Assembly: GCF_046119375.1 (NCBI RefSeq)
Contig: NW_027362767.1
Coordinates: forward strand, 434,248,001-434,312,000
Source of the DNA: Phyllobates terribilis
Taxonomy: Eukaryota
Length of the DNA: 64,000 bases
Direction: 5' to 3'
In this document: positions 2,486-47,524 of the stretch, piece after piece
Layout: the number at the start of each line of letters is the position of its first letter
Position numbering within the stretch: position 1 is the first letter of the stretch
Program-made: the position numbers and the translations under genes
The notes under the pieces: model-generated
The model's input: only the letters and a program-made list of their open reading frames with translations
The model's database searches: none
Told to the model about the DNA's origin: nothing

Positions 2486-2508
2486 AGGTATATCATCTCT
2501 GTACTCAC

Positions 2509-2555
2509 CTGGTTGTGTTTGTACATCACTGGAAATGTGAAGACCCCGATCACCA
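2509..2555 (-). CDS. RTN2: RTN2 reticulon-domain exon ([16 protein letters not shown])
   Basis: 47 nt, TGTTGCAG acceptor, CAG|GTGAGT donor. Confidence 0.9.
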
Positions 2556-5500: not shown

Positions 5501-8500
5501 ACATACAGCACACTGACACTGCTACAACACACTGACACATACAGGACACTGACACTGCTACATACAACACACTGACACTGCTGCAACACACTGACACTGC
5601 TCCATACAACACACTGACACTGCTCCATACAACACACTGACACTGCTCCATACAACACACTGACACTGTCCCATACAGCCCACTGACACTGTCCCATACA
5701 GCCCACTGACACTGTCCCATACAGCCCACTGACACTGTCCCATACAGCCCACTGACACTGCTACATACAGCACACTGAAACTGCTACATACAGCCCACTG
5801 ACACTGCTACATACAGCCCACTGACACTGCTACATACAGCCCACTGACACTGCTACATACAGCCCACTGACACTGCTACATACAGCACACTGACACTGCT
5901 CCATACAGCCCACTGACACTGCTACATACAACACACTGACACATACAGTACACTGCTACATACAACACACTGACACTGCTACATACAACACTGACACTGC
6001 TCCATACAGCCCACTGATATTGCTACATACAACACACTGACACTGCTACATACAACACACTGACACTGCGCTGCTACATACAGCCCACTGACACTGCTAC
6101 AACACACTGACACATACAGTACACTGACACTGCTATATACAACACACTGACACTGCTGCAACACACTGACACATACAGTACACTGACACTGCTCCATACA
6201 GCCCACTGACACTGCTCCATACAGTTATATGAAAAAGTTTGGGCACCCCTATTAATCTTAAGCTTAATGTTTTATAAAAATTGGTGTTTTTGCAGCAGCT
6301 ATTTCAGTTTGATATATGTAATAACTGTTGGACACAGTAATGTTTCTGCCTTGAAATGAGGTTTATTGTACTAACAGAAAATGTGCAATCTGCATTCAAA
6401 CAAAATTTGACAGGTGCATAAGTATGGGCACCCTTATCATTTTCTTGTTTTAAATACTCCTACCTACTTTTTACTGACTTACTAAAGCATTTTTTTGGTT
6501 TTGTAACCTCATTGAGCTTTGAACTTCATAGCCAGGTGTATGCAATCATGAGAAAAGCTACTTAAAGTGGCCACTTGCAAGTTGTTCTCCTGTTTGAATC
6601 TCCTCTGAAGAGTGGCATCATGGGCTCCTCAAAACAACTGTCAAATGATCAGAAAACAAAGATTATTCAACATAGTGGTTCAGGGGAAGGATACAAAAAG
6701 CTGTCTCAGAGATTTAACCTGTCAGTTTCCACTGTGAGGAACATAGTAAGGAAATGGAAGAACACAGGGACAGTTCTTGTTAAGGCCAGAAGTGGCAGGC
6801 CAAGAAAAACATCAGAAAGGCAGAGAAGAAGAATTGTGGGATCAGTCAAGGACAATCCTCAGACCACCTCCAGAGAGCTGCAGCATCAACTTGCTGCAGA
6901 TGGTGTCACTGTGCATCGGTCAACTATACAACGCACTTTGCACAAGGAGAAGCTGTATGGGAGAGTGATGCGAATGAAGCCGTTTCTGCAAGCACGCCAC
7001 AAACAGAGTCGGCTGAGGTATGCAAAAGCACATTTGGAGAAGCCAATTTCTTTTTGGTAGAAGGTCCTATAGACTGATGAAACCAAGAGTGAGTTGTTTG
7101 GTCATACAAAAAGGCGTTATGCATGGCGGCAAAAAAAAAACAGCATTCCAAGAAAAACACTTGCTACCCACAGTCAAATTTGGTGGAGGTTCCATCATGC
7201 TTTGGGGCTGTGTGGCCAATGCCGGCACCGGGAATCTTGTTAAAGTTGAGGGACGCATTGATTCCACTCAGTATCAGCAGATTCTTGACAATAATGTTCA
7301 AGAATCAGTGATAAAGTTGAAGTTACGCAGGGGATGGATCTTTCAGCAAGACAATGATCCAAAACACCGTTCCAAATCTACTCAGGCATTCATGCAGAGG
7401 AACAATTACAATGTTCTGGAATGGCCATCCCAGTCCCCAGACCTGAATATCATTGAACATCTGTGGGATCATTTGAAGAGGGCTGTCCATGCTCGGCGAC
7501 CATCAAACTTAACTGAACTGGAATTGTTTTGTAAAGAGGAATGGTCAAAAATACCTTCATCCAGGATCCAGGAAATCATTAAAAGCTACAGGAAGCGACT
7601 AGAGGCTGTTATTATCGCAAAAGGAGGATCTACTAAATATTAATGTCACTTTTCTGGTGAGGTGCCCATACTTATGCACCTGTCAAATTTTGTTTGAATG
7701 CAGATTGCACATTTTCTGTTAGTACAATAAACCTCATTTCAAGGCAGAAACATTACTGTGTCCAACAGTTATTACATATATCAAATTGAAATAGCTGCTG
7801 CAAAAACACCAATTTTTATAAAACATTAAGCTTAAGATTAATAGGGGTGCCCAAACATTTTCATATAACTGTGCAACACACTGACACTGCTACATACAGC
7901 CCACTGACACTGCTACATACAGAAAACTGACACTGCTACATACAGAAAACTGACACTGCTACATACACCCCACTGACACTGCTACATACAACACACTGAC
8001 ACTGCTACATACAACACACTGACACTGCTACATACAACACACTGACACTGCTACATACAGCACACTGACACTGCTACATACAGCACACTGACACTGCTAC
8101 ATACAGCACACTGACACTGCTACATACAGCACACTGACACTGCTATATTTCAAGCCGAGCAGCCCCCCACAGTTGTCCGGTGGTCATGTCTCCGCACTCA
8201 CTGGAAGGGATTTATTCCGTCTCCCTTCTTCAGGAGTTTGCAGTAGATCCGTATTATGAATGTTGCACTGAGGACGAGGAGACAGGAGTAGGAGACGATG
8301 CTGATCACACTGAACTGGATGAGGCACAGCAGGCACACAGTGAGACCGGTGAGACAGCTGGCAGAGAGAGCGATGTCTCGCCAGTATAAGAGGTCTGCCA
8401 CTGAGAGAGAGAAAAAGAGAGCGAGGTAAGCGTCAGCACCGGCGCAGAGAGCGAGGTAAGCGTCAGCACCGGCGCAGAGAGCGAGGTAAGCGTCAGCACC

Positions 8501-11500
8501 GGCGCAGAGAGCGAGGTAAGCGTCAGCACCGGCGCAGAGAGCGAGGTAAGCGTCAGCACCGGCGCAGAGAGCGAGGTAAGCGTCAGCACCGGCGCAGAGA
8601 GCGAGGTAAGCGTCAGCACCGGCGCAGAGAGCGAGGTAAGCGTCAGCACCGGCGCAGAGAGCGAGGTAAGCGTCAGCACCGGCGCAGAGAGCGAGGTAAG
8701 CGTCAGCACCGGCGCAGAGAGCGAGGTAAGCGTCAGCACCGGCGCAGAGAGCGAGGTAAGCGTCAGCACCGGCGCAGAGAGCGAGGTAAGCGTCAGCACC
8801 GTCGCAGAGAGCGAGGTAAGCGTCAGCACAGGGGCAGAGAGCGAGGTAAGCGTCAGCACAGGGGCAGAGAGCGAGGTAAGCGTCAGCACAGGGGCAGAGA
8901 GCGAGGTAAGCGTCAGCACAGGGGCAGAGAGCGAGGTAAGCGTCAGCACAGGGGCAGAGAGCGAGGTAAGCGTCAGCACAGGGGCAGAGAGCGAGGTAAG
9001 CGTCAGCACCGGCGCAGAGAGCGAGGTAAGCGTCAGCACAGGGGCAGAGAGCGAGGTAAGCGTCAGCACAGGCGCAGAGAGCGAGGTAAGCGCCAGCATG
9101 GGCATTTGGTCATTACCCACCACTGATCCTCTATAATAAGACTGCGCTTGCGTGGCGCTGTTCGCCCTCTATCATGTGACGCTGGGAGATGACATCGCAG
9201 TGATACTATAGTGGATACATAATCCCGGGGATGTGTGTAATAATTTGTAGTCCAGGAGTTAAACTCTCAGTGATGGGGCCCCATACTACTGTCTTACAGA
9301 GCCGCAGGGCCATCAGGGGCTCAGACCGGGCTTCACCTCCAGCAAGTTGACAGGTAATTGATGATTACATTTGGCCCATCTACTCCAGTTCCGGTCCACG
9401 ACCCTGGGGGGGCCGTCAGCTATAGAGGAGACCAGATTACCCCCTCCTACAGATTCAAAATTAAGTGACCCTCAAAAGATCCTCCCTGCGTTTCCCACTA
9501 AGTGCCCATATTGGGTTACTAGGTGGCAGATGGGAGCTGTGGGGCCCCGACCATTTTACAAGAGGGACCCAGATACTTTAACTGACAGCCATGGCTGTGG
9601 AGGGGCCAGGTGCTGTAGGGGGGCCTCACGCTGACACTGATATTTGTCCCTTTTTGCCCCATTCTCGGCCTCCACCCCTCACGTCTCTGCAGGACTCACC
9701 CGCTTTCCTCATGGTGTCCTCCTGGTAGCTGCTCCGGGTCTGGGGTGACAGGTGGTGAGAGTCTCTACGACCAGCGTCTGTGAGGGAAGAAGAAGACACT
9801 AAATATAGATGGACAGGGACAACCCCCCTGAGACGAGCAACAACCTCTGTCCTGAGAACCCCTCTCTGCGGCCAGAAAAAGCCACGGAGAACAGCTGTCC
9901 ACACCCAGGGTCAGCTGCTGCCCACTCCACGCAGGGCACCCCTCATATGCCAGGAAGACACCGCCTGTAGTGGGCACCTTGTGTCCCGGGGGGGGGGGGA
10001 GTCAGCACTTACATATTATTGAAGGTTTTATCAAAGTAAAGGTAGCAAAGAAGTAAGTGACCCCCAGCCCCTGCAGTGGTGAAGAAGTGAACGACAGAGG
10101 AAGACCCCACAATCACCTCCATTATTCCACCTCCTGACCCAGCTGGGAGAGGTGAGCGCTGCAGCCAGAGATTCCCCTCATTCCCAGAAGCTTTAATACA
10201 AAGCTGCGCGGCTTATAGAGATCAGAGACCGCGGGCGATAAGCTGCAACAATGGAGCGCGAGCCAGGAGAAAGCCATTGTATCTCTCCCCATATGCCAGC
10301 ACTGTGTAGAATAACTGATAACGGGGCAGCAGTGATGTCACTTCCTGTATAACATAACTGATATCACAAGAGCAGTGATGTCATATATAAAATCTGCATC
10401 ATACTCCAGAGCTGCGCTCACTATTCTGGTCTAGTCACTGTATACATACATTACATTACTGATCCTGTACTGATCCTGAGTTACATCCTGTATTATACTC
10501 GAGAGCTGCACTCACTATTCTGCTGCTGCTGTCACTGTGTACATACATTACATTACTGATCCTGAGTTACATCCTGTATTATACTCCAGAGCTGCACTCA
10601 CTATTCTGCTGGTGCAGTCACTGTGTACATACATTACATTACTGATCCTGAGTTACATCCTGTATTATACTCCAGAGCTGCACTCACTATTCTGCTGGTG
10701 CAGTCACTGTGTACATACATTACATTACTGATCCTGTACTGATTCTGAGTTACATCCTGTATTATACTCCAGAGCTGCACTCACTATTCTGCTGGTGCAG
10801 TCACTGAGTACATACATTACATTACTGATCCTGTACTGATCCTGAGTTACATCCTGTATTATACTCCAGAGCTGCACTTACTATTCTGCTTGTGCAGTCA
10901 CTGTGTGCATACATTACATTACTGATCCTGTACTTGATCCTGAGTTACATCCTGTATTATACTCCAGAGCAGCACTCACTATTCTGCTGGTGCAATCACT
11001 GTGTACATACATTACATTACTGATCCTGAGTTACATCCTGTATTATACTCCAGAGCTGCACTCACTATTCTGCTGGTGCAGTCACTGTGTACATACATTA
11101 CATTACTGATCCTGAGTTACATCCTGTATTATACTCCAGAGCTGCACTCACTATTCTGCTGGTGCAGTCACTGTGTACATACATTACATTACTGATCATG
11201 AGTTACCTCCTGTATTATACTCCAGAGCTGCACTCACTATTCTGCTGGTGCAGTCACTGTGTACATACATTACATTACTGATCCTGAGTTACATCCTGTA
11301 TTATACTCCAGAGCTGCACTCACTATTCTGCTGGTGCAGTCACTGTGTACATACATTACATTACTGATCCTGAGTTACATCCTGTATTATACTCCAGAGC
11401 TGCACTCACTATTCTGCTGGTGCAGTCACTGTGTACATACATTACATTACTGATCATGAGTTACCTCCTGTATTATACTCCAGAGCTGCACTCACTATTC

Positions 11501-14500
11501 TGCTGGAGGTTTCACTGTACAGTGTTTCCTTGGTGACATCTAGTACTATGTCTCACCCATTGTGATCCCTGATATTTTCGGCTGGGGTTTCTCCACTAGT
11601 GTCTGTTCCTCATAGTTCCTCGGGGGCAGGGCTTGTGTCACCTGACACGCCTTCTCCAAAAGAACATAGGTCACAGTCTCCTCTTCTGGTTCCTCTTTCC
11701 TTGGTAACTGTGCTCGGCCCAGACCCCGTCCCCTTCGGGCCCTAACTGTGGGACGGGTTAATGGGACTGAACTTCCAATGGTAATGTAAGAGAAGGTTGG
11801 CTCCTGAGGTGAAGGTAAGGGCCACAGATCAGCCAGGGTCACCGTGGCATCATCGAGGTCACCTACAACATAGACAGAAGAGCGGCACTGAGCATGTGGC
11901 GTGATGACCGGGCCTCATTTATCAGTACAGCTGTCATTGTTTCCCATAGCAACCAATCACAGTGCAGCTTTCATTTTACCTGAAAAGTTTAAAAAATGAA
12001 AGCTGAACTGTGATTGGTTGTTATGGGCAACAGAAAAAAATTACTGTTGGGTTTGATCAATGAGGCCCAGTATTGTGTTTACATGGACGAGGGGCCATTC
12101 AGAAGGGGCGGAGCTACAAATCAATCGTGCATGTCATGTGACTAATATAGAGGACACACATACACACGGAGTCTTTACCATCTGGAGGGCAGGAGTCCGG
12201 GGTGCTGGAGGCAGTGGATGGAGCGTCCTCTGCAGGAGAAGCACAGACATTACAGGCACAATTTTGATAATTTTTGGGTAAGTTTTGTTTGAATGCATGA
12301 TTGCATGAATGCACAGCACCACTGCCCCCACATAGTCACCTGCACAGCACCACCGCCTCCACACAGTCACCTGCATAGCACCGCCGCCCCTACACAGTCA
12401 CCTGCACAGCACCAAAGCCTCCACACAGTCACCTGCACAGCACCACCACCTCCACAGTCACCTGCACAGCACCGCCGCCCCCCACACAGTTACCTGCACA
12501 GCACCACCGCCTCCACACAGTCACCTGCACAGCACCACCGCCTCCACACAGTCACCTGCACAGCACCACCGCCTCCACACAGTCACCTGCACAGCACCGC
12601 CGCCTCCACACAGTCACCTGCATAGCACCGCCGCCCCTACACAGTCACCTGCACAGCACCAAAGCCTCCACACAGTCACCTGCACAGCACCACCACCTCC
12701 ACAGTCACCTGCACAGCACCGCCGCCCCCCACACAGTTACCTGCACAGCACCACCGCCTCCACACAGTCACCTGCACAGCACCACCGCCTCCACACAGTC
12801 ACCTGCACAGCACCGCCGCCTCCACACAGTCACCTGCACAGCACCGCCGCCTCCACACAGTCACCTGCACAGCACCGCCGCCTCCACACAGTCACCTGCA
12901 CAGCACCGCCGCCTCCACACAGTCACCTGCACAGCACCACTGCCCCCACATAGTCACCTGCACAGCACCACCGCCTCCACACAGTCACCTGCATAGCACC
13001 GCCGCCCCTACACAGTCACCTGCACAGCACCAAAGCCTCCACACAGTCACCTGCACAGCACCACCACCTCCACAGTCACCTGCACAGCATCGCCGCCCCC
13101 CACACAGTTACCTGCACAGCACCACCGCCTCCACACAGTCACCTGCACAGCACCACCGCCTCCACACAGTCACCTGCACAGCACCACCGCCTCCACACAG
13201 TCACCTGCACAGCACCGCCGCCTCCACACAGTCACCTGCATAGCACCGCCGCCCCTACACAGTCACCTGCACAGCACCAAAGCCTCCACACAGTCACCTG
13301 CACAGCACCACCACCTCCACAGTCACCTGCACAGCACCGCCGCCCCCCACACAGTTACCTGCACAGCACCACCGCCTCCACACAGTCACCTGCACAGCTC
13401 CACCGCCTCCACAGTCACCTGCACAGCACCGCCGCCTCCACACAGTCACCTGCACAGCACCGCCGCCTCCACACAGTCACCTGCACAGCACCGCCGCCTC
13501 CACACAGTCACCTGCACAGCACCGCCGCCCCCCACAGAGTCATCTGCACAGCACCACCGCCTCCACACAGTCACCTGCACAGCACCACCGCCCCCACACA
13601 GTCACCTGCACAGCACCGCCGCCTCCACACAGTCACCTGCACAGCACCGCCGCCTCCACAGTCACCTGCACAGCACCGCCGCCTCCACAGTCACCTGCAC
13701 AGCACCGCTGCCCCCACACAGTCACCTGCACAGCACCACCACCTCCACAGTCACCTGCACAGCACCACTACCTCCACAGTCACCTGCACAGCACCGCCGC
13801 CCCCACACAGTCACCTGCACAGCACCGCCACCTCCACAGTCACCTGCACAGCACCACCGCCTCCACACAGTCACCTGCACAGCACCACCGCCTCCACACA
13901 GTCACCTGCACAGCACCACCGCCCCCACACAGTCACCTGCACAGCACCACCGCCCCCACACAGTCACCTGCACAGCACCACCACCTGCACAGCACCAAAG
14001 CCTCCACACAGTCACCTGCACAGCACCACCACCTCCACCCCCACAGTCACCTGCACAGCACCGCCGCCCCCCCCACAGTCATCTGCACAGCACCGCCGCC
14101 CCCACAGTCACCTGCACAGCACCGCCACCCCCAGACAGTCACCTGCACAGCACCGCCGCCCCCAGACAGTCACCTGCACAGCACCGCCGCCTCCAGTCAC
14201 CTGCACAGCACCACCGCCTCCACAGTCACCTGCACAGCACCAAAGCCTCCACACAGTCACCTGCACAGCACCACCACCTCCACCCCCAGTCACCTGCACA
14301 GCACCGCCGCCCCCCCCACAGTCATCTGCACAGCACCGCCGCCCCCCCCACAGTCATCTGCACAGCACCGCCGCCCCCAGTCACCTGCACAGCACCACCA
14401 CCCCCAGACAGTCACCTGCACAGCACCGCCGCCCCCAGACAGTCACCTGCACAGCACCGCCGCCCCCAGACAGTCACCTGCACAGCACCGCCGCCCCCAG

Positions 14501-17500
14501 ACAGTCACCTGCACAGCACCGCCGCCCCCAGACAGTCACCTGCACAGCACCGCCGCCCCCAGACAGTCACCTGCACAGCACCGCCGCCCCCAGACAGTCA
14601 CCTGCACAGCACCGCCGCCTCCACACAGTCACCTGCACAGCACCGCCGCCTCCACACAGTCACCTGCACAGCACCGCCGCCTCCACAGTCACCTGCACAG
14701 CACCGCCGCCTCCACAGTCACCTGCACAGCACTGCCGCCCCCACACAGTCACCTGCACAGCACCGCCACCCCCACAGTCACCTGCACAGCACCGCCGCCT
14801 CCAGTCACCTGCACAGCACCACCGCCTCCACAGTCACCTGCACAGCACCAAAGCCTCCACACAGTCACCTGCACAGCACCACCACCTCCACCCCCAGTCA
14901 CCTGCACAGCACCGCCGCCCCCCCACAGTCATCTGCACAGCACCGCCGCCCCCCCCACAGTCATCTGCACAGCACCGCCGCCCCCAGTCACCTGCACAGC
15001 ACCACCACCCCCAGACAGTCACCTGCACAGCACCGCCGCCCCCAGACAGTCACCTGCACAGCACCGCCGCCCCCAGACAGTCACCTGCACAGCACCGCCG
15101 CCCCCAGACAGTCACCTGCACAGCACCGCCACCCCCAGACAGTCACCTGCACAGCACCGCCGCCCCCAGACAGTCACCTGCACAGCACCGCCGCCCCCAG
15201 ACAGTCACCTGCACAGCACCGCCGCCTCCACACAGTCACCTGCACAGCACCGCCGCCTCCACACAGTCACCTGCACAGCACCGCCGCCTCCACAGTCACC
15301 TGCACAGCACCGCCGCCTCCACAGTCACCTGCACAGCACCACCGCCTCCACACAGTCACCTGCACAGCACCACCGCCTCCACACAGTCACCTGCACAGCA
15401 CCGCCGCCTCCACACAGTCACCTGCATAGCACCGCCGCCCCTACACAGTCACCTGCACAGCACCAAAGCCTCCACACAGTCACCTGCACAGCACCACCAC
15501 CTCCACAGTCACCTGCACAGCACCGCCGCCCCCCACACAGTTACCTGCACAGCACCACCGCCTCCACACAGTCACCTGCACAGCTCCACCGCCTCCACAG
15601 TCACCTGCACAGCACCGCCGCCTCCACACAGTCACCTGCACAGCACCGCCGCCTCCACACAGTCACCTGCACAGCACCGCCGCCTCCACACAGTCACCTG
15701 CACAGCACCGCCGCCCCCCACAGAGTCATCTGCACAGCACCACCGCCTCCACACAGTCACCTGCACAGCACCACCGCCCCCACACAGTCACCTGCACAGC
15801 ACCGCCGCCTCCACACAGTCACCTGCACAGCACCGCCGCCTCCACAGTCACCTGCACAGCACCGCCGCCTCCACAGTCACCTGCACAGCACCGCTGCCCC
15901 CACACAGTCACCTGCACAGCACCACCACCTCCACAGTCACCTGCACAGCACCACTACCTCCACAGTCACCTGCACAGCACCGCCGCCCCCACACAGTCAC
16001 CTGCACAGCACCGCCACCTCCACAGTCACCTGCACAGCACCACCGCCTCCACACAGTCACCTGCACAGCACCACCGCCTCCACACAGTCACCTGCACAGC
16101 ACCACCGCCCCCACACAGTCACCTGCACAGCACCACCGCCCCCACACAGTCACCTGCACAGCACCACCACCTGCACAGCACCAAAGCCTCCACACAGTCA
16201 CCTGCACAGCACCACCACCTCCACCCCCACAGTCACCTGCACAGCACCGCCGCCCCCCCCACAGTCATCTGCACAGCACCGCCGCCCCCACAGTCACCTG
16301 CACAGCACCGCCACCCCCAGACAGTCACCTGCACAGCACCGCCGCCCCCAGACAGTCACCTGCACAGCACCGCCGCCTCCAGTCACCTGCACAGCACCAC
16401 CGCCTCCACAGTCACCTGCACAGCACCAAAGCCTCCACACAGTCACCTGCACAGCACCACCACCTCCACCCCCAGTCACCTGCACAGCACCGCCGCCCCC
16501 CCCACAGTCATCTGCACAGCACCGCCGCCCCCCCCACAGTCATCTGCACAGCACCGCCGCCCCCAGTCACCTGCACAGCACCACCACCCCCAGACAGTCA
16601 CCTGCACAGCACCGCCGCCCCCAGACAGTCACCTGCACAGCACCGCCGCCCCCAGACAGTCACCTGCACAGCACCGCCGCCCCCAGACAGTCACCTGCAC
16701 AGCACCGCCGCCCCCAGACAGTCACCTGCACAGCACCGCCGCCCCCAGACAGTCACCTGCACAGCACCGCCGCCCCCAGACAGTCACCTGCACAGCACCG
16801 CCGCCTCCACACAGTCACCTGCACAGCACCGCCGCCTCCACACAGTCACCTGCACAGCACCGCCGCCTCCACAGTCACCTGCACAGCACCGCCGCCTCCA
16901 CAGTCACCTGCACAGCACTGCCGCCCCCACACAGTCACCTGCACAGCACCGCCACCCCCACAGTCACCTGCACAGCACCGCCGCCTCCAGTCACCTGCAC
17001 AGCACCACCGCCTCCACAGTCACCTGCACAGCACCAAAGCCTCCACACAGTCACCTGCACAGCACCACCACCTCCACCCCCAGTCACCTGCACAGCACCG
17101 CCGCCCCCCCACAGTCATCTGCACAGCACCGCCGCCCCCCCCACAGTCATCTGCACAGCACCGCCGCCCCCAGTCACCTGCACAGCACCACCACCCCCAG
17201 ACAGTCACCTGCACAGCACCGCCGCCCCCAGACAGTCACCTGCACAGCACCGCCGCCCCCAGACAGTCACCTGCACAGCACCGCCGCCCCCAGACAGTCA
17301 CCTGCACAGCACCGCCACCCCCAGACAGTCACCTGCACAGCACCGCCGCCCCCAGACAGTCACCTGCACAGCACCGCCGCCCCCAGACAGTCACCTGCAC
17401 AGCACCGCCGCCTCCACACAGTCACCTGCACAGCACCGCCGCCTCCACACAGTCACCTGCACAGCACCGCCGCCTCCACAGTCACCTGCACAGCACCGCC

Positions 17501-19289
17501 GCCTCCACAGTCACCTGCACAGCACTGCCGCCCCCACACAGTCACCTGCACAGCACCGCCACCCCCACAGTCACCTGCACAGCACCGCCACCCCCAGACA
17601 GTCACCTGCACAGCACCACCGCCCCCAGACAGTCACCTGCACAGCACCGCCGCCTCCACACAGTCACCTGCACAGCACCACCGCCTCCACAGTCACCTGC
17701 ACAGCACCAAAGCCTCCACACAGTCACCTGCACAGCACCACCACCTCCACCCCCACAGTCACCTGCACAGCACCGCCGCCCCCCCACAGTCATCTGCACA
17801 GCACCACCACGCCCAGACAGTCACCTGCACAGCACCGCCGCCCCCAGACAGTCACCTGCACAGCACCGCCGCCTCCACACAGTCACCTGCACAGCACCGC
17901 CGCCTCCACACAGTCACCTGCACAGCACCGCCGCCTCCACAGTCACCTGCACAGCACCGCCGCCCCCACACAGTCACCTGCACAGCACCGCCACCCCCAC
18001 ACAGTCACCTGCACAGCACCGCCGCCCCCACACAGTCGCCTGCACAGCACCACCATCGCCCCCACACAGTCGCCTGCACAGCACCACCATCGCCCCCAGA
18101 CAGTCACCTGCACAGCACCACCGCCCCCACATAGTCACCTGCACAGCACCGCCGCCCCCACACAGTCACATGCACAACACCACTGCCCCCACACAGCACT
18201 GCCGCCCCTACACAGCAAACACACAGATATATACACACGGCACAGCTAATACACAGATTATATACACACGGCACGTCTAATACACCGATATATACACACG
18301 GCACAGCTAATACACAGATATATACACACGGCACAGCTAATACACAGATATATACACACGGCACAGCTAATACACAGATTATATACACACGGCACAGCTA
18401 ATACACAGATATATACACACGGCACGTCTAATACACAGATATATACACACGGCACAGCCAATACACAGATATATACACACGGCACAGCTAATACACAGAT
18501 ATATACACACGGCACAGCCAATACACAGATATATACACACGGCACAGCTAATACACAGATATATACACACGGCACAGCCAATACACAGATATATACACAC
18601 GGCACAGCCAATACACAGATATATACACACGGCACAGCTAATACACAGATATATACACACGGCACGTCTAATACACAGATATATACACACGTCACGTCTA
18701 ATACACCGATATATACACACGGCACAGCTAATACACAGATATATACACACGGCACAGCTAATACACAGATTATATACACACGGCACAGCTAATACACAGA
18801 TATATACACACGGCACGTCTAATACACAGATATATACACACGGCACAGCCAATACACAGATATATACACACGGCACAGCCAATACACAGATATATACACA
18901 CGGCACAGCCAATACACAGATATATACACACGGCACAGCTAATACACAGATATATACACACGGCACAGCCAATACACAGATATATACACACGGCACAGCC
19001 AATACACAGATATATACACACGGCACAGCTAATACACAGATATATACACACGGCACAGCTTATACAGTCAGAGCACTACTGTAGTAGTGTGACGGCAACA
19101 CACTGACATGTGATGATCTGGGTGACAGTCACACGAGGACGCCGCGCTCCTCGCTCTCTATAGGATACACCCATATGCAGCCCCTACATAACAATGATGG
19201 AGGAGAGCCTGCACCTGCACTCACAGCGAGACACAATGATACAGCAGGCGACACTTACTGCAGTGTGTGAACGACAGGACGTGTCCCAT
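2509..19289 (-). CDS. RTN2: Reticulon-2, partial (last exons lie beyond the window start). Exons: 19289-19259, 12229-12179, 11862-11557, 9777-9700, 8400-8202, 3825-3687, 2809-2740, 2555-2509
   Basis: All introns are GT-AG with consistent phases. N-terminus [23 protein letters not shown] and EPTFSYI match the RTN2-A motifs [20 protein letters not shown] and ELTFSYI. Reticulon domain starts VADLLYW, with typical 139/70/47-nt exons. Syntenic with VASP and OPA3. Confidence 0.93.
2740..2809 (-). CDS. RTN2: RTN2 reticulon-domain exon ([23 protein letters not shown])
   Basis: 70 nt, CCGCAG acceptor, G|GTAAGA donor, conserved NGLTL. Confidence 0.93.
3030..3432. mobile_element. Degenerate T2/Kolobok-like MITE
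   Basis: Imperfect inverted termini AGGGAATCTATCACC / AGAGAATCGCCACC. Left flank TTAG resembles a TTAA target site. Confidence 0.45.
3687..3825 (-). CDS. RTN2: RTN2 reticulon-domain exon (KYLDMD...[15 protein letters not shown])
   Basis: 139 nt, CTCAG acceptor, AAG|GTAAAG donor. Confidence 0.93.
4110..6220. repeat. 23-bp minisatellite (ACAGCCCACTGACACTGCTCCAC), resuming at 7872-8145 after the Tc1 insertion
   Basis: Clear periodicity on both sides of the transposon. Confidence 0.95.
6222..7871 (+). mobile_element. Full-length Tc1/mariner DD34E transposon of IR/DR type, with inactivated transposase (6620-7643)
   Basis: About 211-bp terminal inverted repeats (6222-6432 and 7661-7871) with GGGCACCC direct repeats, TA on the left. 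[18 protein letters not shown] motifs. Two TAG stops near 7060-7072 and a frameshift in an A-run near 7131-7140. Confidence 0.95.
8202..8400 (-). CDS. RTN2: RTN2 reticulon-domain exon (VADLLYWRD...NPFQ)
   Basis: TCTCTCAG acceptor, CA|GTGAGT donor, first hydrophobic hairpin of the reticulon domain. Confidence 0.95.
8418..9095. repeat. 30-bp minisatellite (AGCGAGGTAAGCGTCAGCACCGGCGCAGAG), about 22 copies
   Basis: Near-perfect units abutting the RTN2 exon acceptor. Confidence 0.95.
9700..9777 (-). CDS. RTN2: RTN2 exon 4 (DAGRRDSH...DTMRKA)
   Basis: Strong pyrimidine tract ending CCTCACAG, donor G|GTGAGT, phase 1-1. DTMRKA|VADLL parallels human ADMGSK|VADLL. Confidence 0.75.
10405..11510. repeat. 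86-bp tandem repeat (TACTCCAGAGCTGCACTCACTATTCTGC...)
   Basis: Identical ORFs recur at 86-nt offsets. Related degenerate reverse copies near 37100-37230. Confidence 0.93.
11557..11862 (-). CDS. RTN2: RTN2 exon 3 (includes EPTFSYIT)
   Basis: TGTTGTAG acceptor, G|GTGAGA donor, 306 nt open frame, TFSYI motif. Confidence 0.82.
11943..12027. repeat. Short palindromic dispersed element (AACCAATCACAG..GCAGCTTTCAT), copy 1
   Basis: About 35-bp imperfect inverted arms. Related copies at 40122-40211 and 40390-40465, half-copy near 26242-26268. Confidence 0.7.
12179..12229 (-). CDS. RTN2: RTN2 exon 2 ([17 protein letters not shown])
   Basis: TTCTCCTGCAG acceptor, G|GTAAAG donor, conserved [11 protein letters not shown]. 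Confidence 0.9.
12310..18220. repeat. 29-31-bp C-rich minisatellite (CACAGTCACCTGCACAGCACCGCCGCCTC), about 5.9 kb
   Basis: Clear periodicity plus a 2186-bp higher-order duplication. Confidence 0.95.
18225..19060. repeat. 30-bp minisatellite (GATATATACACACGGCACAGCTAATACACA)
   Basis: Clear periodicity. Confidence 0.95.
19259..19289 (-). CDS. RTN2: RTN2 coding exon 1 ([10 protein letters not shown])
   Basis: ATG at 19289, donor A|GTAAGT, phase 1. Confidence 0.88.
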
Positions 19290-19534
19290 ATCCGCTGTCT
19301 GCCGGTGACACCCATACAGACCCACAAGCGCGCACCCCACAGCGTGTTCTCTCCCTGCCTAGCATCTCATTGTGGAGCAACCTGACACACACAACTCACA
19401 AACACAGGGAGGGGCGAGCGCAGCAGACAAAGGCCTGAGAGGGGGCAGGAAATGACTACTGCACACAGCCATTCATGGACCAACAGCAAAAGAGACAAGG
19501 GACCGCTCCACCCCACAATCCTGTCATCAGATGA

Positions 19535-20210: not shown

Positions 20211-21166
20211 TGGATCTATACTATGCAGTGTTGACGGCCTGTGTGTAGCACCATATACTGCTCTGTACTGTGTGCGGCACTATCCTCCTATATTACCTCT
20301 GTAATATGGCATCCGATGTAGCAGCCATTATTTCTGCGGTTTCCCCATAGTCGTGGTCGCCGTGTTACTGGTGTGAATACGACTTGTGGATATGAACCCA
20401 CGTTGTGACATAAAGTGGCCACAGCCTGCCCAAACATACAATGCATATTTATGCGATCTCCATGTGCGGATGTGTTCACATGTGGTGGTTTTATCACCAT
20501 GATCACAAAGCAGCTTTCCAATGATTTTACCCAAAAAAAAACAAAACATGAAATCACAAGAAAATTAGTAATAAATCATGAAGACCAGATCCAGTGCGAC
20601 GAGGATGATGAGGGTGATTTTGAATAACTTTGCGCCCCTTTGATCAGGATCCGTCAGACCGTGGTGACTATGAAACGGATGGTGAGCTGACATGATTACC
20701 ACACGTCTCCATGGAAACCACAGGAATCCATTATGTAGAGCCTCCCCCGCCCAGTCCAGGTGATCAACACCGCAGCTTCACCTGAGCCCACATTTAACCC
20801 TCGCTGCGCCCTGGATGTCGGGATCATGACCTCTGCGTGTCAGGAGGTGACAGTGGTCAGTGAAGACTGGAAAACTGCTCAACTAGCCATTACCCAATGA
20901 GGCGGCCACCATTTTTGTTTATATGTGGTTTAGCAGGTCTGACTGCTCCGGTACCTGGTTTTGTAGATTGTGTGTATAATTTTGTGTTTTTTGTTTGTAC
21001 CGTGATTGTGCAGACGGTGGTCGGTTGCCCGGACCCCGTTGTCTCCTCGGGTGGGGCGACGATGGTGGATGTAGAATGTGACACTCCTCTTCACACCTGG
21101 CAGTGATTTTCTGGTCAGCAAATACCGAAGTATAAGATCTGCAGGAGGAGACGCCGCCGGGGAGAC

Positions 21167-21377
21167 ATGGAGTCCCAACCGCTCCTCCGGCCTGAGCAGG
21201 ACACCCGCTTCTGGGTGTGTGTACGTCGGGGGCTGCTGGTCCTTTTCTGGATATTACTTGCTGCACTCCTTATTTCTGCCATCATCATTCTCTCCGAGGC
21301 GTATGTGCCGCCTCCACCAAGCGCGTGGCACCAACGTCGAGTGATCTGCCGCATCGCAGGACTGACGCCGCAGACCG
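21167..21377 (+). CDS. SLC3-like exon 1: short cytoplasmic tail and transmembrane helix
   Basis: Kozak GACATGG, hydrophobic segment at about L23-L42, donor G|GTGAGT. Confidence 0.85.
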
Positions 21378-24300
21378 GTGAGTTATATGTGGGGGGGCCC
21401 CCACCCCAACTGCCATGGCGGATGTATCCAAATGGCAGAGGGAATGGCCGTGATGTTAGGTTTGTGATTCTCTCTGGGTGACTTGAAACTACAACTACCA
21501 GCATGAGGAGAAGAGCGTGCGTTACGTGGGGGCGCCGTGCCACACGTCCTCTCTATACATCTCTTGCCCCCCATGTCTTACAGATGTGACACACAGAATA
21601 CGAGAGGCGTCGGCCCTGGGATGTGGGGGTCTCGTCCTCACCCAGGAGGAGGTGACTAACGGGAGTGTGAGAGGTCAGATGAGTGAGGGGCAGAGATACG
21701 GTAAGTGGCTGTCGTGGTCTGAATGGCCGCGCTGAGTAACGAGTTTGAGTCCTGATCACCTCTGTGGGCTTCACGTTCCCAGGTGTCCGCATCATCCTGG
21801 AGGTCCAGATACTGGAGGAATACGACGGCCGTCAAGTCCAGAGACTGAAGGTGATGATGTCATAGTCTATGGGAGATATTTATACATGAGATTGTGAGGA
21901 GAGATGTAAGATTCTATTCACACTCGTTTTTGTTTTTTTTTGGAAACTGGAAAATCCACAACACAAAATCTGTGTGTGTGAACATCGCCCTAAAATTAAT
22001 TCCCATGCCAAGTATGTTTTTTGTGCTCAACAAAATACAGCATTTTACAGTTCCAATAATGTATGGGATTTATAGAAATCTCCTGCCTGCTGGGCCTTTT
22101 TTTTTTTTTTGCATGTCTAACATTTATTTCCCTATGCGAATGTTCCCCATAAACTTGAATGAGGTGGGGTGGGGGTGGGGGTGGGGGGTTGTACATGTAA
22201 TCTGCATATGACTTTATCCATAAAGTTTTATCACCGCTAAGTAACGGGGAAGTTTCCAGCATGAAGCCGTTTTATTTACAGCCTGACCACAAGGAGGAGA
22301 AAAAAAAAAAAAAATGTGATTTTTGTCAACACAATTAACCTAATTTTTGTAATTGGTGCAGAAAATCTTCAGCATCGAAAAACTCATTGTGGGAACTCGG
22401 CCAAAAGCTTTGCACCAGAGGGTAATGGTCTGCAGGCTCCACATTGCTGGGGAGTCGCCTGTAGAGCGGCGCTGTAGTCTATGATCTAACAGCTCAGCGT
22501 CAGGCAGCTGCTCGCCACTCTCATTAGGGGCTCAGGTGCAGAAATCTCCAGGACTTCTATACACTTCTTCTAGACCACCGCTCCATTCAGACAGGAAACC
22601 CGGACCGCCCCATTCTTGTGATCAATGGGGGTCCCAGCGGTGTAACCCTCTCCTCCCCACTATCCTGTTGTGATTGTGTCACAAACCCTGGACTTGTGGG
22701 ACCGGGATGTAATATTAGCACTTTATAACGGAGTGGGGAATGTACAAAGAATAATCAAACTGAGGAAGCGGCTGGAGACGAGATAATCGGGGAATTACAT
22801 GGATTTAGCGTTAAGAAGAGGCGTCTGAGGAGAGAAGACCAACCTGAGCCAGTATAGAAATGACCCATACAATAAATACGGTGAAAATCTGGCTGCTAAG
22901 TAGACAAGAGCGCCCCCTCCTGTTGGAAGAATGAAGGTTCTGTTTCCAGAAATGAACAGGATTCTTTACTGTAAGAGCAGACAAGCTGTGGAGAAAGGGG
23001 AGGACAGGATTGTTCATTGATTGACTCTGGTGTGGATGTAAAGCCCTTCATTCCTTCAGTAGGAGGGGGGCGCTCTTCTATCTCACACATTCCCACCCCA
23101 GTTTCTCAATTAGCCATCTTGTCCTTGCTCCACAGCTTGTCTGCTCTTACAGTAAAGAATCCTGTTCATTTCTTCAGTAGCAGCTCTTGCGTGTTAGTGT
23201 TCAGTAATGATCAGTCGTCTTTACTGAAGCTGTAGGTGGGTAACATATTGAAAGAAGGAGAGGAGTCTCAAAGAAACTGACAATGTGTAGAACAGGTTCA
23301 GTCTGCCAAGATGGGCAGGCTTTTTTACTGTAAGAGCGGTAACTCTAAGGCTATTTATTACTACCTCAGCAGTTATTAAAGGGGGCTGGGGGGTGGGGTT
23401 GTCATCGGCTGCAAATTTCACTGCCCCCTCCAGTGGCCCACCCACACAAACTCCAGGGCTGTATCCCCTCATTTTTAGTAACTTGAGCCCATCTTGTGCA
23501 GGACTCTGCCCGGAGCTGGATGGAAGATGGAGCATCTGGGTTCCAGCTTTTAGGTGACAAGAAAACAACTGTAATGATGGTGAGAGGGGAAATGAGGTGC
23601 TGTCAGCACTGGTACCTGGGGGCGGGGCTGACAATCTCTGTGATGACATCAACAGGGGGTGGGGCTGACAAGCTCTGTGATGTCATCACCAGGGGGGCAG
23701 GGCTGTGACTGTCTGATCTGATGTCAATCACTCTATGATCCTTGTTCGGGGGACAGTTTGGATACTTGTGCTATAGTCAGTGACTACGATACGTCTTGAT
23801 TTTTGGCAGATATCTCAGATCCTCCTGAATGAAGTAGAAATCGCCAGCGGGGAGGAAAGGTGACAACCGAGTAATCACACAGTGACGTATCCTCACAAAA
23901 GAAAATGCTCTAACAAAACTCTATAATTAGGCTAATCCTGCTTCCTAATTGGCTGTGTGACGACGAGGATACATCCAAAAATAAGTCCCAACTTCTGCGC
24001 ACCTGTCCTCTGCCCGACTGGAACCTGCAAAAGTTCCCTACGGGGTCAGAAATGAAGGACATGGCCTGGGAGGTGAGTGGTCGACAGCGGGAGAGGGGAA
24101 GGGCACTTCATAAAGTAACCTCTTATTTTCTGCAGGTGACGTCTGATGACATTGATTCTCTGGAGTTGAGACAGTTCCTGGCTGTAACCCTACCCGGAAC
24201 CGTCATACTGTCCCTGAACCAGGTGTGTCACCCCGGGGTCACATAATGCAGCAAAAGGGTCCGCTCACCTGATAAGGGTAACACATACTGAGAAATGTAT

Positions 24301-25176
24301 CACACATGGCTGAGAAAGCGTATCATAGCAGGTACAACACTGTCACTGTACATAGGGGTAGTATTATAGTAGTTATATTCTTATACATATGGGCAGTATT
24401 ATAGTAGTTATATTCTTGTACATAGGGGCAGTATTATAGTAGTTATATTCTTGTACATAGGGGGCAGTATTATAGCAGTTATATTCTTGTACATAGGGGG
24501 CAGTATTATAGCAGTTATATTCTTGTACATAGGAGCAGTATTATAGTAGTTATATTCTTGTACATAGGGGGCAGTATTATAGCAGTTATATTCTTGTACA
24601 TAGGGGGCAGTATTATAGCAGTTATATTCTTGTACATAGTGGCAGTATTATAGCAGTTATATTCTTGTACATAGGGGGCAGTATTATAGTAGTTATATTC
24701 TTGTACATAGGGGGCAGTATTATAGTAGTTATATTCTTGTACATAGGGGGCAGTATTATAATATACACTGATTAGGTATTTTTGCATACTGATGACTTTC
24801 TGAGGATCTGTCTGTTCCCATCCCCCAGTTGATGTCTTTATCCTCGTTGTCTCCACAGTCCGTCTCGCCGCCCTTCTGGCTCCGCTCTCTTCTCCACCTG
24901 CGATACCAGAACCCCGCGCTCTACACTGGTCGGCTGCAGCTTTTATCTAATGGCTCCTCTTACAGCGCTTTATCCTCCTGGGCCTGTTCCACGCTTCTAG
25001 TCCTTATTGGTCATTCTGATCAATCGCACAACGTGTCACTGCATTTTCCCAATTTCTCAAATGCTGTTCGATTATTGTTGAGTACCAAACTGGAGCGCAA
25101 CAGAGGTCAGCTGCTCCAGGACAGCGTTCAGCTGGTGCCAGGTGAAGCTCAGCTCATCCGCCTCATACCAGAATGA
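21167..25176 (+). CDS. Divergent SLC3-family heavy-chain-like (4F2hc/rBAT-like) type II membrane glycoprotein, about 353 aa. Exons: 21167-21377, 21584-21700, 21783-21850, 23502-23570 (or 23579), 23810-23859, 23931-24072, 24136-24222, 24859-25176
   Basis: Eight exons with canonical splice sites join into one open frame. FWVCVRRGLLVLFW plus a transmembrane segment resembles 4F2hc WVRTRWALLLLFW. Other matches: ALGCGGLVL vs SLKVKGLVL, GVRIILEV vs SIRVILDL, SWMEDGASGFQL vs FWLQAGVDGFQV, QFLAVTLPGTVI vs QLMLFTLPGTPV, LLLSTKLER vs LLLSTQPGR. Comparison is from memory of human SLC3A2. Confidence 0.85.
21584..21700 (+). CDS. SLC3-like exon 2 (DVTHRIREASALGCGGLVL...QRY)
   Basis: TCTTACAG acceptor, G|GTAAGT donor, phase 1-1. 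Confidence 0.85.
21783..21850 (+). CDS. SLC3-like exon 3 (GVRIILEV...QRLK)
   Basis: TTCCCAG acceptor, AAG|GTGATG donor, GH13 beta-3-like motif. Confidence 0.82.
22705..22915 (+). mobile_element. Degenerate CR1-like LINE 3' fragment
   Basis: Piecewise translation DVILALY...VQRIIKL and LHGFSVKKRRLRRE resembles the CR1 ORF2 C-terminal LFSLEKRRLRGD. Confidence 0.4.
22948..23173. repeat. Perfect 46-bp inverted repeat with 134-nt spacer (MITE-like)
   Basis: 22948-22993 is the exact reverse complement of 23128-23173. Confidence 0.85.
23502..23570 (+). CDS. SLC3-like exon 4 (DSARSWMEDGASGFQLLGDKKTT)
   Basis: TTGTGCAG acceptor. 69 nt, the same length I recall for the 4F2hc DALEFW exon. An alternative in-frame donor ATG|GTGAGA follows 23579. 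Confidence 0.78.
23810..23859 (+). CDS. SLC3-like exon 5 (ISQILLNEVEIASGEER)
   Basis: TTTTGGCAG acceptor, AG|GTGACA donor, phase 0-2. Confidence 0.72.
23931..24072 (+). CDS. SLC3-like exon 6 (RLILLPNW...DMAWE)
   Basis: ATTAG acceptor, GAG|GTGAGT donor, phase 2-0. R|LIL parallels 4F2hc R|LLI. Confidence 0.78.
24136..24222 (+). CDS. SLC3-like exon 7 (VTSDD...TLPGTVILSLNQ)
   Basis: TTTTCTGCAG acceptor, CAG|GTGTGT donor, TLPGT motif. Confidence 0.85.
24345..24760. repeat. About 36-bp minisatellite (GTACATAGGGGGCAGTATTATAGTAGTTATATTCTT)
   Basis: Clear periodicity in the last intron of the SLC3-like gene. Confidence 0.93.
24859..25176 (+). CDS. SLC3-like terminal exon (C-domain, 105 aa plus stop)
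   Basis: CTCCACAG acceptor, TGA at 25174-25176, ATTAAA at 25215-25220. Confidence 0.85.
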   Translation, partial: SVSPPFWLRSLLHLRYQNPALYTGRLQLLSNGSSYSALSSWACSTLLVLIGHSDQSHNVSLHFPNFSNAVRLLLSTKLERNRGQLLQDSVQLVPGEAQLIRLIPE

Positions 25177-25429
25177 AACTTTTTTTTTTTTTTTTTTTTT
25201 GTATTTTTAACTTTATTAAATAATTTTTGTGATATGTAACGGGCAAGTTGTCTGTATTTCTGATATCACCAATTGGTTTCAGAAGACTGCGTCTGTCCTG
25301 AGATCCGCAGGTCTCTTGTTTATCTTTATTGTGCTCCCCGTTCTCTGGAGTCTGTCATTTGTAAGCGCAGTTCACACAACAAGCCCCCAGGGGTCACTTT
25401 AGAGTGTCGCAGACCAGTATCCAGACACC

Positions 25430-25740: not shown

Positions 25741-26599
25741 GCAGTCTGTCTAGACTGCAGTAATCTCTTCCCATAGACAGTGATGATCTCCCTATGATTC
25801 ATGCTCCTGCGGCCTGTGAAAGCTCCAGCATGGCGGGAGCTCGGCTGCTTTACCTGGGGCAAAAGGAGTAATGTTCTGCCCTAAAGCTTTATCCAACAAC
25901 CTCTACCCAGGCGGCACAATGGCTTGTTAGCCTCCCCTCCCCTGACACGGCACCTGGGGTAAATGCCCCTTATCCCCAGCTACCCCTTTGCTTCACAGTG
26001 ATCCCTGGTCAGGGGCTAAATCAGTAATGGCTGATGACGTCATTACATCAGTGATGTCATCACCAGGGGGTGGGGCTGACAAGCTCTCAGTGATGTCATC
26101 ACAAGGGGGCGGGGCTGACAACCCCTCACACATGTATACAGGCTGGTTGTCAGCAGTGATGGATGAGGAGCTGGTGCTGGAGTATAAGGGGCTGGGGCTG
26201 TGTCCCTTGTCTTTTGAGAATCTATTTTGGGCAGATTAATGAAATGAAAGCTGCGCTGTGATTGGTCGGTGACTGAACAGTTGTTATAAATATTTCCCCT
26301 GTAGATTCAGACTTTATATAGAGAATATGGTGGCGGCTCCCGCGGTCACCTGCCAGGTGTGATCTCCCCTCCCTCCACACTGTAAACCCCCCGGGGGCTG
26401 CAGCAAATGCTGTGGGGGAAGGTGCATGTGGCGTTGCTGCTTTAAGTGGTGGGGCTGTGGCTTGTGGCCGCTTTAAGAGAAGGCAGATCCCAAAAGAGAG
26501 GAAGTGATAGCTTGTAACAGAGAGGAAAGAAAGAGGCAGAAAGAGACCGAGAAAGAAAGGGAGAGAGAAAGAAGGAAAGAAAGACAAAAAAGAGGGCTC

Positions 26600-26828
26600 T
26601 AGAGAGACGGCTGCGTCTATAGCTCTGCTGTACACGGGCGGAGGCTGATGAGCAGAGCCGGGCTGAGCACATAGGCGCCGGGCAGGGAGGCTCTCAGGGG
26701 CCCCGGGAGGAGGCAGCTGGTGCAGGGGCCACTTCCTGCTATGCCCAGATAGCTGAGGGGCACAGGAGAGTTAGGGTGGGGGCAGCACAGGTGAGGACAC
26801 ATTCCTACCAGGAGGCGGCGCCAGCAGC

Positions 26829-26833
<5 letters not shown>
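26600..26833 (+). promoter_or_regulatory. GC/CpG-rich VASP promoter and 5' UTR region
   Basis: CpG-rich stretch just upstream of the ATG, preceded by a GA-rich purine tract at about 26515-26600. Confidence 0.5.

Positions 26834-47524
<20,691 letters not shown>

Follow-up and report, generated by a model that had tools for sequence, protein, structure and literature searches.

A stretch of 64,000 nucleotides of the genome of the frog Phyllobates terribilis (contig NW_027362767.1, positions 434,248,001 to 434,312,000; hereafter the window, to which all coordinates refer) carries, at 21167-25176 on the + strand, an eight-exon gene situated between a reticulon gene and VASP. The available evidence supports the view that the encoded protein is a divergent homologue of SLC3A2 (4F2hc or CD98hc), nearer to SLC3A2 than to rBAT or to other proteins of the GH13 (alpha-amylase-like) type, and the gene is very probably a separate, third SLC3-type gene of frogs, distinct from their SLC3A2. 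Whether further heavy chains exist for the orphan light chains of heteromeric amino-acid transporters has been asked for more than 20 years. Reviews assign to vertebrates two such heavy chains, namely SLC3A1 (rBAT) and SLC3A2 (4F2hc), which escort SLC7 light chains to their membrane (e.g. PMC7285653).

Gene structure and transcription

When the exons are rebuilt from the window letters and joined, they form a single uninterrupted frame of 356 codons followed by a TGA stop, with all seven introns of the GT..AG type, pyrimidine-rich acceptors and cumulative phases 1,1,0,0,2,0,0. The start ATG has G at both -3 and +4, an in-frame TGA (21104-21106), 60 nt 5' of it, closes the upstream open reading frame (ORF), and the frame contains five N-glycosylation sequons (NGS twice, NKS, NVS and NFS). 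The gene is real and the eight-exon observation is confirmed, the pattern being far beyond chance. The canonical splicing into one frame, the good start context, the five sequons, the stop and the ATTAAA described in the original prediction are all present, while its protein length of 353 residues has to be corrected to 356.

Transcription was assessed in Logan contigs of RNA runs from the window species or one very close to it, run X5 being from a related species. Exact joints were found for introns 1, 2 and 3 (runs X2 and X3), intron 4 (X20) and intron 5 (X5), so that RNA bears out five of the seven introns expected; among the same contigs no spliced one was seen for introns 6 and 7. The 5' region is covered by contigs 21013-21135 (X3) and 21039-21209 (X5), and exon 8 is covered in six runs up to a T-run at 25171. 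The contigs have a low depth (2-6) and include a few unspliced ones, from which it follows that the RNA runs also contain pre-mRNA or DNA.

Upstream of the start, an ORF spans 20897-21166 in the frame of the gene until the TGA mentioned above interrupts it. A 464-residue model of Dendrobates tinctorius takes the equivalent stretch as coding, and the 397-residue model of Eleutherodactylus coqui uses a different frame; these N-terminal extensions were rejected as annotation artefacts, given the different frames and the stop in the window. Positions 21047-21172 are conserved with the E. coqui (L001) and Dendropsophus (L002) loci in several frames, which indicates conservation at the DNA level, and the upstream stretch is more likely a conserved 5' untranslated region (UTR) or promoter than a real N-terminal extension. 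As to annotated in-frame isoforms, one of E. coqui skips exons 5 and 6 (64 residues) and one of Ascaphus skips exon 7 (29 residues), and shorter isoforms labelled X2 are annotated in both Ranitomeya species; alternative splicing may, therefore, remove parts of the barrel. The features of the gene are collected in table 1.

Table 1. Features of the gene in the window and the evidence on which each one is placed.
Feature	Coordinates	Strand	Evidence
5' UTR and proximal promoter	21013..21166	+	RNA contigs; DNA conservation among hyloid frogs
Exon 1: start codon, short cytoplasmic tail, transmembrane (TM) helix, proline-rich linker, first barrel strand	21167..21377	+	donor GTGAGT; Pfam SLC3A2_N; intron 1 joint
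ExxxLL acidic dileucine-type motif ESQPLL, residues 2-7	21170..21187	+	family alignment
Single TM helix (predicted), about residues 19-43	21221..21295	+	alignment to 4F2hc TM helix; AlphaFold model
Exon 2	21584..21700	+	canonical splice sites; RNA joints on both sides (X2, X3); 117 nt in 4/4 frog genomes
Exon 3	21783..21850	+	canonical splice sites; intron 2 and intron 3 joints; 68 nt in 4/4 frog genomes
Exon 4, with WMEDGASGFQLL strand aligned to 4F2hc WLQAGVDGFQV	23502..23579	+	intron 3 joint (X3), intron 4 joint (X20); alignment
Exon 5	23810..23859	+	intron 4 joint, intron 5 joint (X5); 50 nt in 4/4 frog genomes
Exon 6, two conserved cysteines and NKS sequon	23931..24072	+	canonical splice sites; RNA contig 23929-24068; 142 or 136 nt in other frogs
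Exon 7, with LRQFLAVTLPGT strand aligned to 4F2hc FTLPGTPVF	24136..24222	+	canonical splice sites; 87, 81 or 84 nt in other frogs
Exon 8: last barrel helix, C-terminal beta domain, stop	24859..25176	+	weak Pfam DUF3459; RNA contigs 24900-25170 in six runs
ATTAAA polyadenylation signal (putative)	25215..25220	+	sequence letters alone; RNA contigs end at T-run 25171

Relation to SLC3A2 and to GH13 proteins

The Pfam model SLC3A2_N (PF16028) matches exon 1 of the window with an E-value of 1.1e-7 and 31.8 bits (cut-off 27); in the orthologues the match is at the same location with 19.9-25.2 bits, i.e. under the cut-off. At the C-terminus, DUF3459, a C-terminal domain of GH13 proteins, matches weakly (E 0.038 in the window, down to 2e-4 in orthologues), and none of eight family members matches the Alpha-amylase model (PF00128) when E-values up to 1 are allowed. 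A profile built from ten members of the frog family aligns with the human 4F2hc chains at E 7e-13, collinearly from the membrane helix to the last strand; the corresponding values are about 1.4, over 22 residues, for rBAT and 0.014, on the C-terminal domain, for sucrose isomerases.

The AlphaFold model calculated on the family alignment is of moderate quality (pLDDT 64.5, pTM 0.57), and in it a long N-terminal helix (residues 9-45; block-mean pLDDT 88-91 for residues 21-40) precedes a barrel of alternating strands and helices, after which comes a C-terminal beta domain. With this model, the top Foldseek matches in the PDB are 4F2hc chains (E 7e-10), with GH13 enzymes after them, and those in Swiss-Prot are the four SLC3A2 entries, again ahead of GH13 enzymes; rBAT does not occur among the top 30, and the only vertebrate relatives returned by a fold search of AlphaFold clusters were 4F2hc entries. 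By language-model features, the nearest clusters are those of SLC3A2 (0.95, with 196 of 256 features shared). The best PDB match of exon 8 is a bacterial alpha-amylase, at the junction of helix 8 and the C-terminal domain.

Homology with the SLC3 ectodomain (GH13 barrel and C-terminal beta domain) is, therefore, supported by the profile, by Foldseek and, weakly, by DUF3459. A type II topology is predicted from the one N-terminal hydrophobic helix and from the conserved N-x-S/T sequons, found only C-terminal of it. The strand aligned with GH13 region II, in the column presumed to hold the catalytic nucleophile, reads SGFQLLG. As judged from these features, the ectodomain is a stripped-down, probably non-enzymatic and presumably glycosylated GH13 fold. 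Much of what had been proposed for the protein is thereby upheld: its motifs follow one another in the order of 4F2hc, a strand-helix (TIM-type) barrel is predicted, albeit in a moderate model, and one of the two Pfam families named for it, SLC3A2_N, is recovered, the Alpha-amylase family not. Taken with the selection and locus data below, the profile and fold results support the original prediction of an intact, compact and divergent SLC3 paralogue that is not SLC3A2 itself.

A conserved gene family of frogs

Homologues were sought by an exhaustive phmmer search with exon 8, by two profile searches and by using the Ranitomeya protein (87% identical) as a proxy query. The exon 8 search gave seven homologue clusters, all anuran, and one spurious repeat protein, and the two profile searches gave more homologues. 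The family includes Ranitomeya variabilis, R. imitator, Dendrobates tinctorius, Anomaloglossus, Eleutherodactylus coqui, Dendropsophus, Hyla sarda, Leptodactylus, Engystomops, Pseudophryne, Mixophyes, Hyperolius, Staurois, Rhinophrynus and Ascaphus truei. Apart from members of the frog family, the word-indexed searches yielded just a few bacterial GH13 enzymes, with neither SLC3A1 nor SLC3A2 among the matches, and the membrane-helix region of Pseudophryne, when used as query, matched only itself. The gene is present in public annotations yet unnamed: its entries are all labelled as 'uncharacterized', 'hypothetical' or 'unnamed' protein, with one UniRef name beginning 'Solute carrier family 3', so that the automated 4F2hc-like label that had been considered possible does not appear. 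The stated lack of a functional description was borne out, a literature search having turned up no paper on the gene; the name 'SLC3A3' occurs there only as a typing error for other genes.

The 356-residue models of both Ranitomeya species and of Anomaloglossus align with the window protein without gaps (86-87% identity), full-length models of 354-361 residues are found in several further frog species, and the Ascaphus protein is about 44-46% identical to that of the window. Orthologous exons with the same eight-exon layout are conserved in the genomic DNA of E. coqui, Dendropsophus ebraccatus and Mixophyes fleayi, the exon sizes across the four frog genomes being 211-226, 117, 68, 78, 50, 136-142, 81-87 and 318-324 nt. 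The ratio of non-synonymous to synonymous divergence (dN/dS), determined from four species with dS of 0.5-1.4, is 0.33-0.40 in pairwise comparisons among the three hyloids (bootstrap interval 0.25-0.45, significantly below 1) and 0.25-0.32 against Mixophyes, and the C-terminal third (exon 8) is the most constrained part (0.17-0.26). Five cysteines (61, 84, 184, 200 and 294) and the sequons at 191 and 282 are conserved in the family; the ExxxLL motif is kept in 11/11 complete N-termini of the family alignment, including those of Ascaphus (ESQPIL) and Mixophyes (ESHSLL), and cysteines, sequons and N-terminal motif are invariant from Ascaphus to the dendrobatids. From the shared layout, the open frames and a dN/dS of about 0.33 it follows that the gene is real, old within frogs and under purifying, yet fairly relaxed, selection.

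The locus and its repeats

Upstream of the gene, on the - strand, lie two reticulon-homology exons (2453-2923 and 3495-3884), each with a weak Pfam Reticulon match, as single exons, and a large N-terminal exon (11285-11839). Downstream, an EVH1 exon on the + strand (31489-31695) passes the Pfam WH1 model and scores higher against human VASP (65 bits) than against ENAH (60) or EVL (57). The window is collinear with the Dendropsophus and E. coqui loci. Among called genes, the order Reticulon (-), family gene (+), WH1 plus VASP_tetra (+, 383 residues) is found in Ranitomeya and Dendrobates; furthermore, Reticulon lies upstream of the family gene in Dendropsophus and Hyperolius, and the VASP EVH1 exon lies downstream of it in the window, E. 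coqui and Mixophyes. In the frogs checked the family gene is thus beside the reticulon gene, VASP or both, and was not found at an SLC3A2-type position. In Xenopus both slc3a1 and an SLC3A2 expressed in the pronephros are known (PMC2441470, Table 1 and reference 20), so that anurans possess both canonical genes too. A locus of its own between RTN2 and VASP, together with SLC3A2 as the nearest relative, leads to the reading of the gene as a separate third SLC3-type gene.

The reticulon gene (RTN2-like) extends over 2453-19400 (-) and VASP over 26338-31695 and onward (+); the gap to the former is only about 1.7 kb and that to the latter about 1.1 kb, and no PP2C-type (PPM1N-like) gene was found between the two in the window. 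Inside the reticulon gene, between the large exon and its 5' end, a 5.9 kb array of about 190 copies of a 31-bp unit (12310-18196) is followed by a 30-bp array (18211-19066). Intron 7 of the SLC3-type gene contains a minisatellite with the 36-bp unit TTGTACATAGGGGGCAGTATTATAGTAGTTATATTC (24347-24760), and nearly the same unit is found in the same intron of Dendropsophus (L002, 12868-13790) and E. coqui (L001, 25410-26325), though not of Mixophyes. The summed word depths of this unit in RNA-run contigs reach 1e5 or more, so that it must be very abundant genome-wide, transcribed, or both. More than 20 further minisatellite arrays, with units of 23-86 bp, occur in the window. Two Tc1-like transposase remnants are present (6566-7640 and 57689-58808); directly after the latter stands a 71-bp tandem array (58640-60136; 21 copies, 97% identity) whose translation (SMPRRCREVIQARGGHTQY) resembles the C-terminal end of a Tc1/mariner transposase.

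Comparison with known heavy chains

The frog protein shares with 4F2hc a single N-terminal membrane helix with the common start W-V-R-x-R/W-x-L-L-L-L-F-W, an ectodomain that aligns collinearly with the barrel and the C-terminal beta domain of 4F2hc, the lack of a match to the active alpha-amylase model, and N-glycosylation sequons in the C-terminal part. The helix is the segment closest to 4F2hc, and within the frog family its start (W-V-x-V-R-R-x-L-L-x-L-F-W) has stayed 4F2hc-like over more than 200 million years. Unlike 4F2hc, with its approximately 530 residues, the frog protein has only 356, with about 110 ectodomain residues fewer and a cytoplasmic tail of about 18 residues, which begins M-E-S-Q-P-L-L with the ExxxLL motif. 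As previously suggested, loops are shortened: strand 2 is followed by a gap of about 20 residues, the segment linking strand 8 to helix 8 is about 50-70 residues shorter, and the PMEAPVMLW stretch of human 4F2hc has no counterpart in the alignment. The gene also differs in its RTN2-VASP neighbourhood.

The only cysteines of human 4F2hc near or in the ectodomain are Cys109 and Cys330, whereas the frog family conserves its five other ones. In 4F2hc the cysteine that bonds the light chain is Cys109 (numbered Cys211 in PMC11001984; conserved heavy-chain cysteine in PMC7285653), and one cryo-EM study argues that the ectodomain owes its tether to LAT1 chiefly to the disulfide together with the membrane helix (PMC7285653). 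The frog protein lacks this cysteine 4-5 residues past the helix, where a Pro of AYVPPPPS, in the conserved AY-x-PPP linker, aligns, and in all frogs the first ectodomain cysteine is Cys61, inside predicted strand 1. Furthermore, Lys533 and Arg535 of 4F2hc, which contact LAT1 and Asc-1 (PMC11001984, PMC7285653), are replaced by Gln268 and Pro270, near-invariant in frogs and part of an R-x-Q-N-P-A-L-x-x-G stretch that is nearer to generic GH13 enzymes than to 4F2hc. The possibility that the missing loop was the holder of these contacts was ruled out, for they align with the retained residues 268 and 270.

With SLC3A1 (rBAT), the likeness consists in the predicted type II membrane glycoprotein architecture with a GH13-derived ectodomain and in the weak DUF3459/GH13-type matches of the frog C-terminal domain; rBAT is, however, about twice as long, and the rBAT-type clusters returned lack SLC3A2_N. 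Bacterial GH13 alpha-glucosidases and amylases share the barrel and beta-domain fold and give remote matches (E from 8e-4 to 10), but the frog protein carries a membrane anchor, has no PF00128 match and reads SGFQLLG at the nucleophile strand. Another vertebrate SLC3A2-like gene beyond the named ones is zebrafish si:dkey-202g17.3 on chromosome 15, which is listed among SLC3A2-type genes, with no data on its expression or function (PMC8478756, Table 1); it was not among the matches of the searches with the frog proteins, and the paper just cited is the only one found that mentions it.

Proposed function and origin

The frog protein may act as an escort or ancillary subunit of a multi-pass membrane partner, most plausibly a light chain of the SLC7 type, as 4F2hc does. 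The partner would be held through the 4F2hc-like TM helix and the membrane-facing side of the ectodomain, and, for want of the juxtamembrane cysteine, the two would pair non-covalently. The [DE]xxxL[LI] pattern is a known sorting consensus, and the invariant chain, also a type II protein, has such a signal at its extreme N-terminus. The ExxxLL motif fits this adaptor-binding consensus, which would indicate adaptor-dependent sorting, i.e. delivery to endosomes or lysosomes, or rapid internalization. The strongest constraint within the family falls on residues 220-275, aligned with the 4F2hc region of Lys533 and Arg535, and together with the 4F2hc-like helix it may be counted, tentatively, toward an escort role. 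Indeed, for a protein that combines such a helix with a constrained membrane-proximal face and no disulfide, a non-covalent escort would be the most economical reading. The role is, nonetheless, put forward at somewhat less than even confidence and with SLC7 as a candidate partner only, a role unrelated to SLC7 being nearly as likely. The most specific version, in which the gene would be an 'SLC3A3', namely the surviving genome-duplication twin of SLC3A2 encoding a non-disulfide third heavy chain steered by its dileucine motif to endosomes or lysosomes, is conceivable but rather unlikely.

As for its origin, the gene may go back to the vertebrate genome duplications, as an old copy of SLC3A2 that was lost in mammals, a reading to which about an even chance is given. 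In the human genome RELB, MARK4, FOSB, RTN2, VASP and EML2 are taken to lie together at 19q13.32, and their paralogues RELA, MARK2, FOSL1, RTN3 and EML3 presumably lie together with SLC3A2 at 11q12-q13. If this paralogy holds, the RTN2 side is where the genome-duplication twin of SLC3A2 is to be expected. Zebrafish si:dkey-202g17.3 may be the fish counterpart of the frog gene.

Alternative explanations

That the gene is simply the species' own, fast-evolving SLC3A2 orthologue might be suggested by the fact that SLC3A2 is its closest known protein. Such a reading is very improbable in view of the reticulon/VASP flanks in the frogs checked (hyloids, a ranoid and a myobatrachoid), of the canonical SLC3A2 expressed in the Xenopus pronephros (PMC2441470, reference 20) and of the NCBI pipeline, which named none of these genes SLC3A2 in more than 10 annotated frogs. 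Even more improbable is a decaying duplicate that is still weakly transcribed: the low RNA depth and the unspliced contigs, the truncated domain and the fairly high dN/dS would be in keeping with it, but open frames and an identical exon layout are shared by 4/4 genomes at the DNA level, full-length models of similar size occur in several more species, dN/dS is significantly below 1, and the cysteines, the sequons and the N-terminal motif are invariant across the family.

If a third SLC3-type gene is accepted, its product may have no SLC7-related task, its dead-glycosidase domain serving instead in a lectin-like, adhesion or signalling glycoprotein or in another escort. This is a serious, if somewhat doubtful, alternative, which draws on the lost disulfide cysteine and the changed equivalents of Lys533 and Arg535, on the missing ectodomain residues and cytoplasmic tail, and on the five family-specific cysteines and the strongest constraint being in the ectodomain and not in the membrane helix; it has against it the long-lasting likeness of the helix start to 4F2hc, the lack of any match pointing to another function, and the fact that the disulfide is not strictly needed for 4F2hc function. 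With respect to origin, a duplicate of SLC3A2 that arose in the anuran stem, landed beside RTN2, shrank and diverged quickly falls a little short of an even chance. Homologues limited to Anura, fast evolution (as seen in the Ascaphus identity and in dN/dS) and the retained SLC3A2-specific N-terminal domain favour such a frog-specific event. Yet the gene would occupy, on the human map, the position expected of a genome-duplication twin; its C-terminal domain keeps the generic GH13 motif R..NPAL..G, which human 4F2hc has lost; the extra zebrafish gene si:dkey-202g17.3 (PMC8478756, Table 1) is a possible fish counterpart; and the searches that returned only Anura are weak at this divergence.

Taken as a whole, a third SLC3-type gene that acts as an escort and descends from an old duplication is the best explanation, with a probability slightly above one half. 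Several observations weigh against it. No homologue was detected outside Anura by the exhaustive exon 8 search and the two profile searches, methods that are weak at this divergence, and such an absence is hard to square with an origin 500 million years ago; within the family, dN is highest in the membrane-helix region; the heavy-chain disulfide cysteine is absent, and Gln and Pro occupy the positions of Lys533 and Arg535; PF00128 is not matched; the AlphaFold model is only moderate, and the Foldseek TM-scores are under 0.5, as expected for a shorter protein and such a model; the coexistence with a canonical SLC3A2 rests on Xenopus and not on one same species; and the partner is itself inferred.

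Significance

A conserved third gene provides a concrete heavy-chain candidate to be cloned and tested, so far in frogs only. The frog protein also represents a natural minimal 4F2hc ectodomain, which indicates that the fold can do without the disulfide cysteine, without about 110 residues of the ectodomain and without most of the cytoplasmic tail. If the gene is indeed an old genome-duplication copy, it would add one more case of a gene-family member that amphibians kept and mammals lost and, should the 'SLC3A3' reading hold true, frogs would have an intracellular heteromeric amino-acid transporter.

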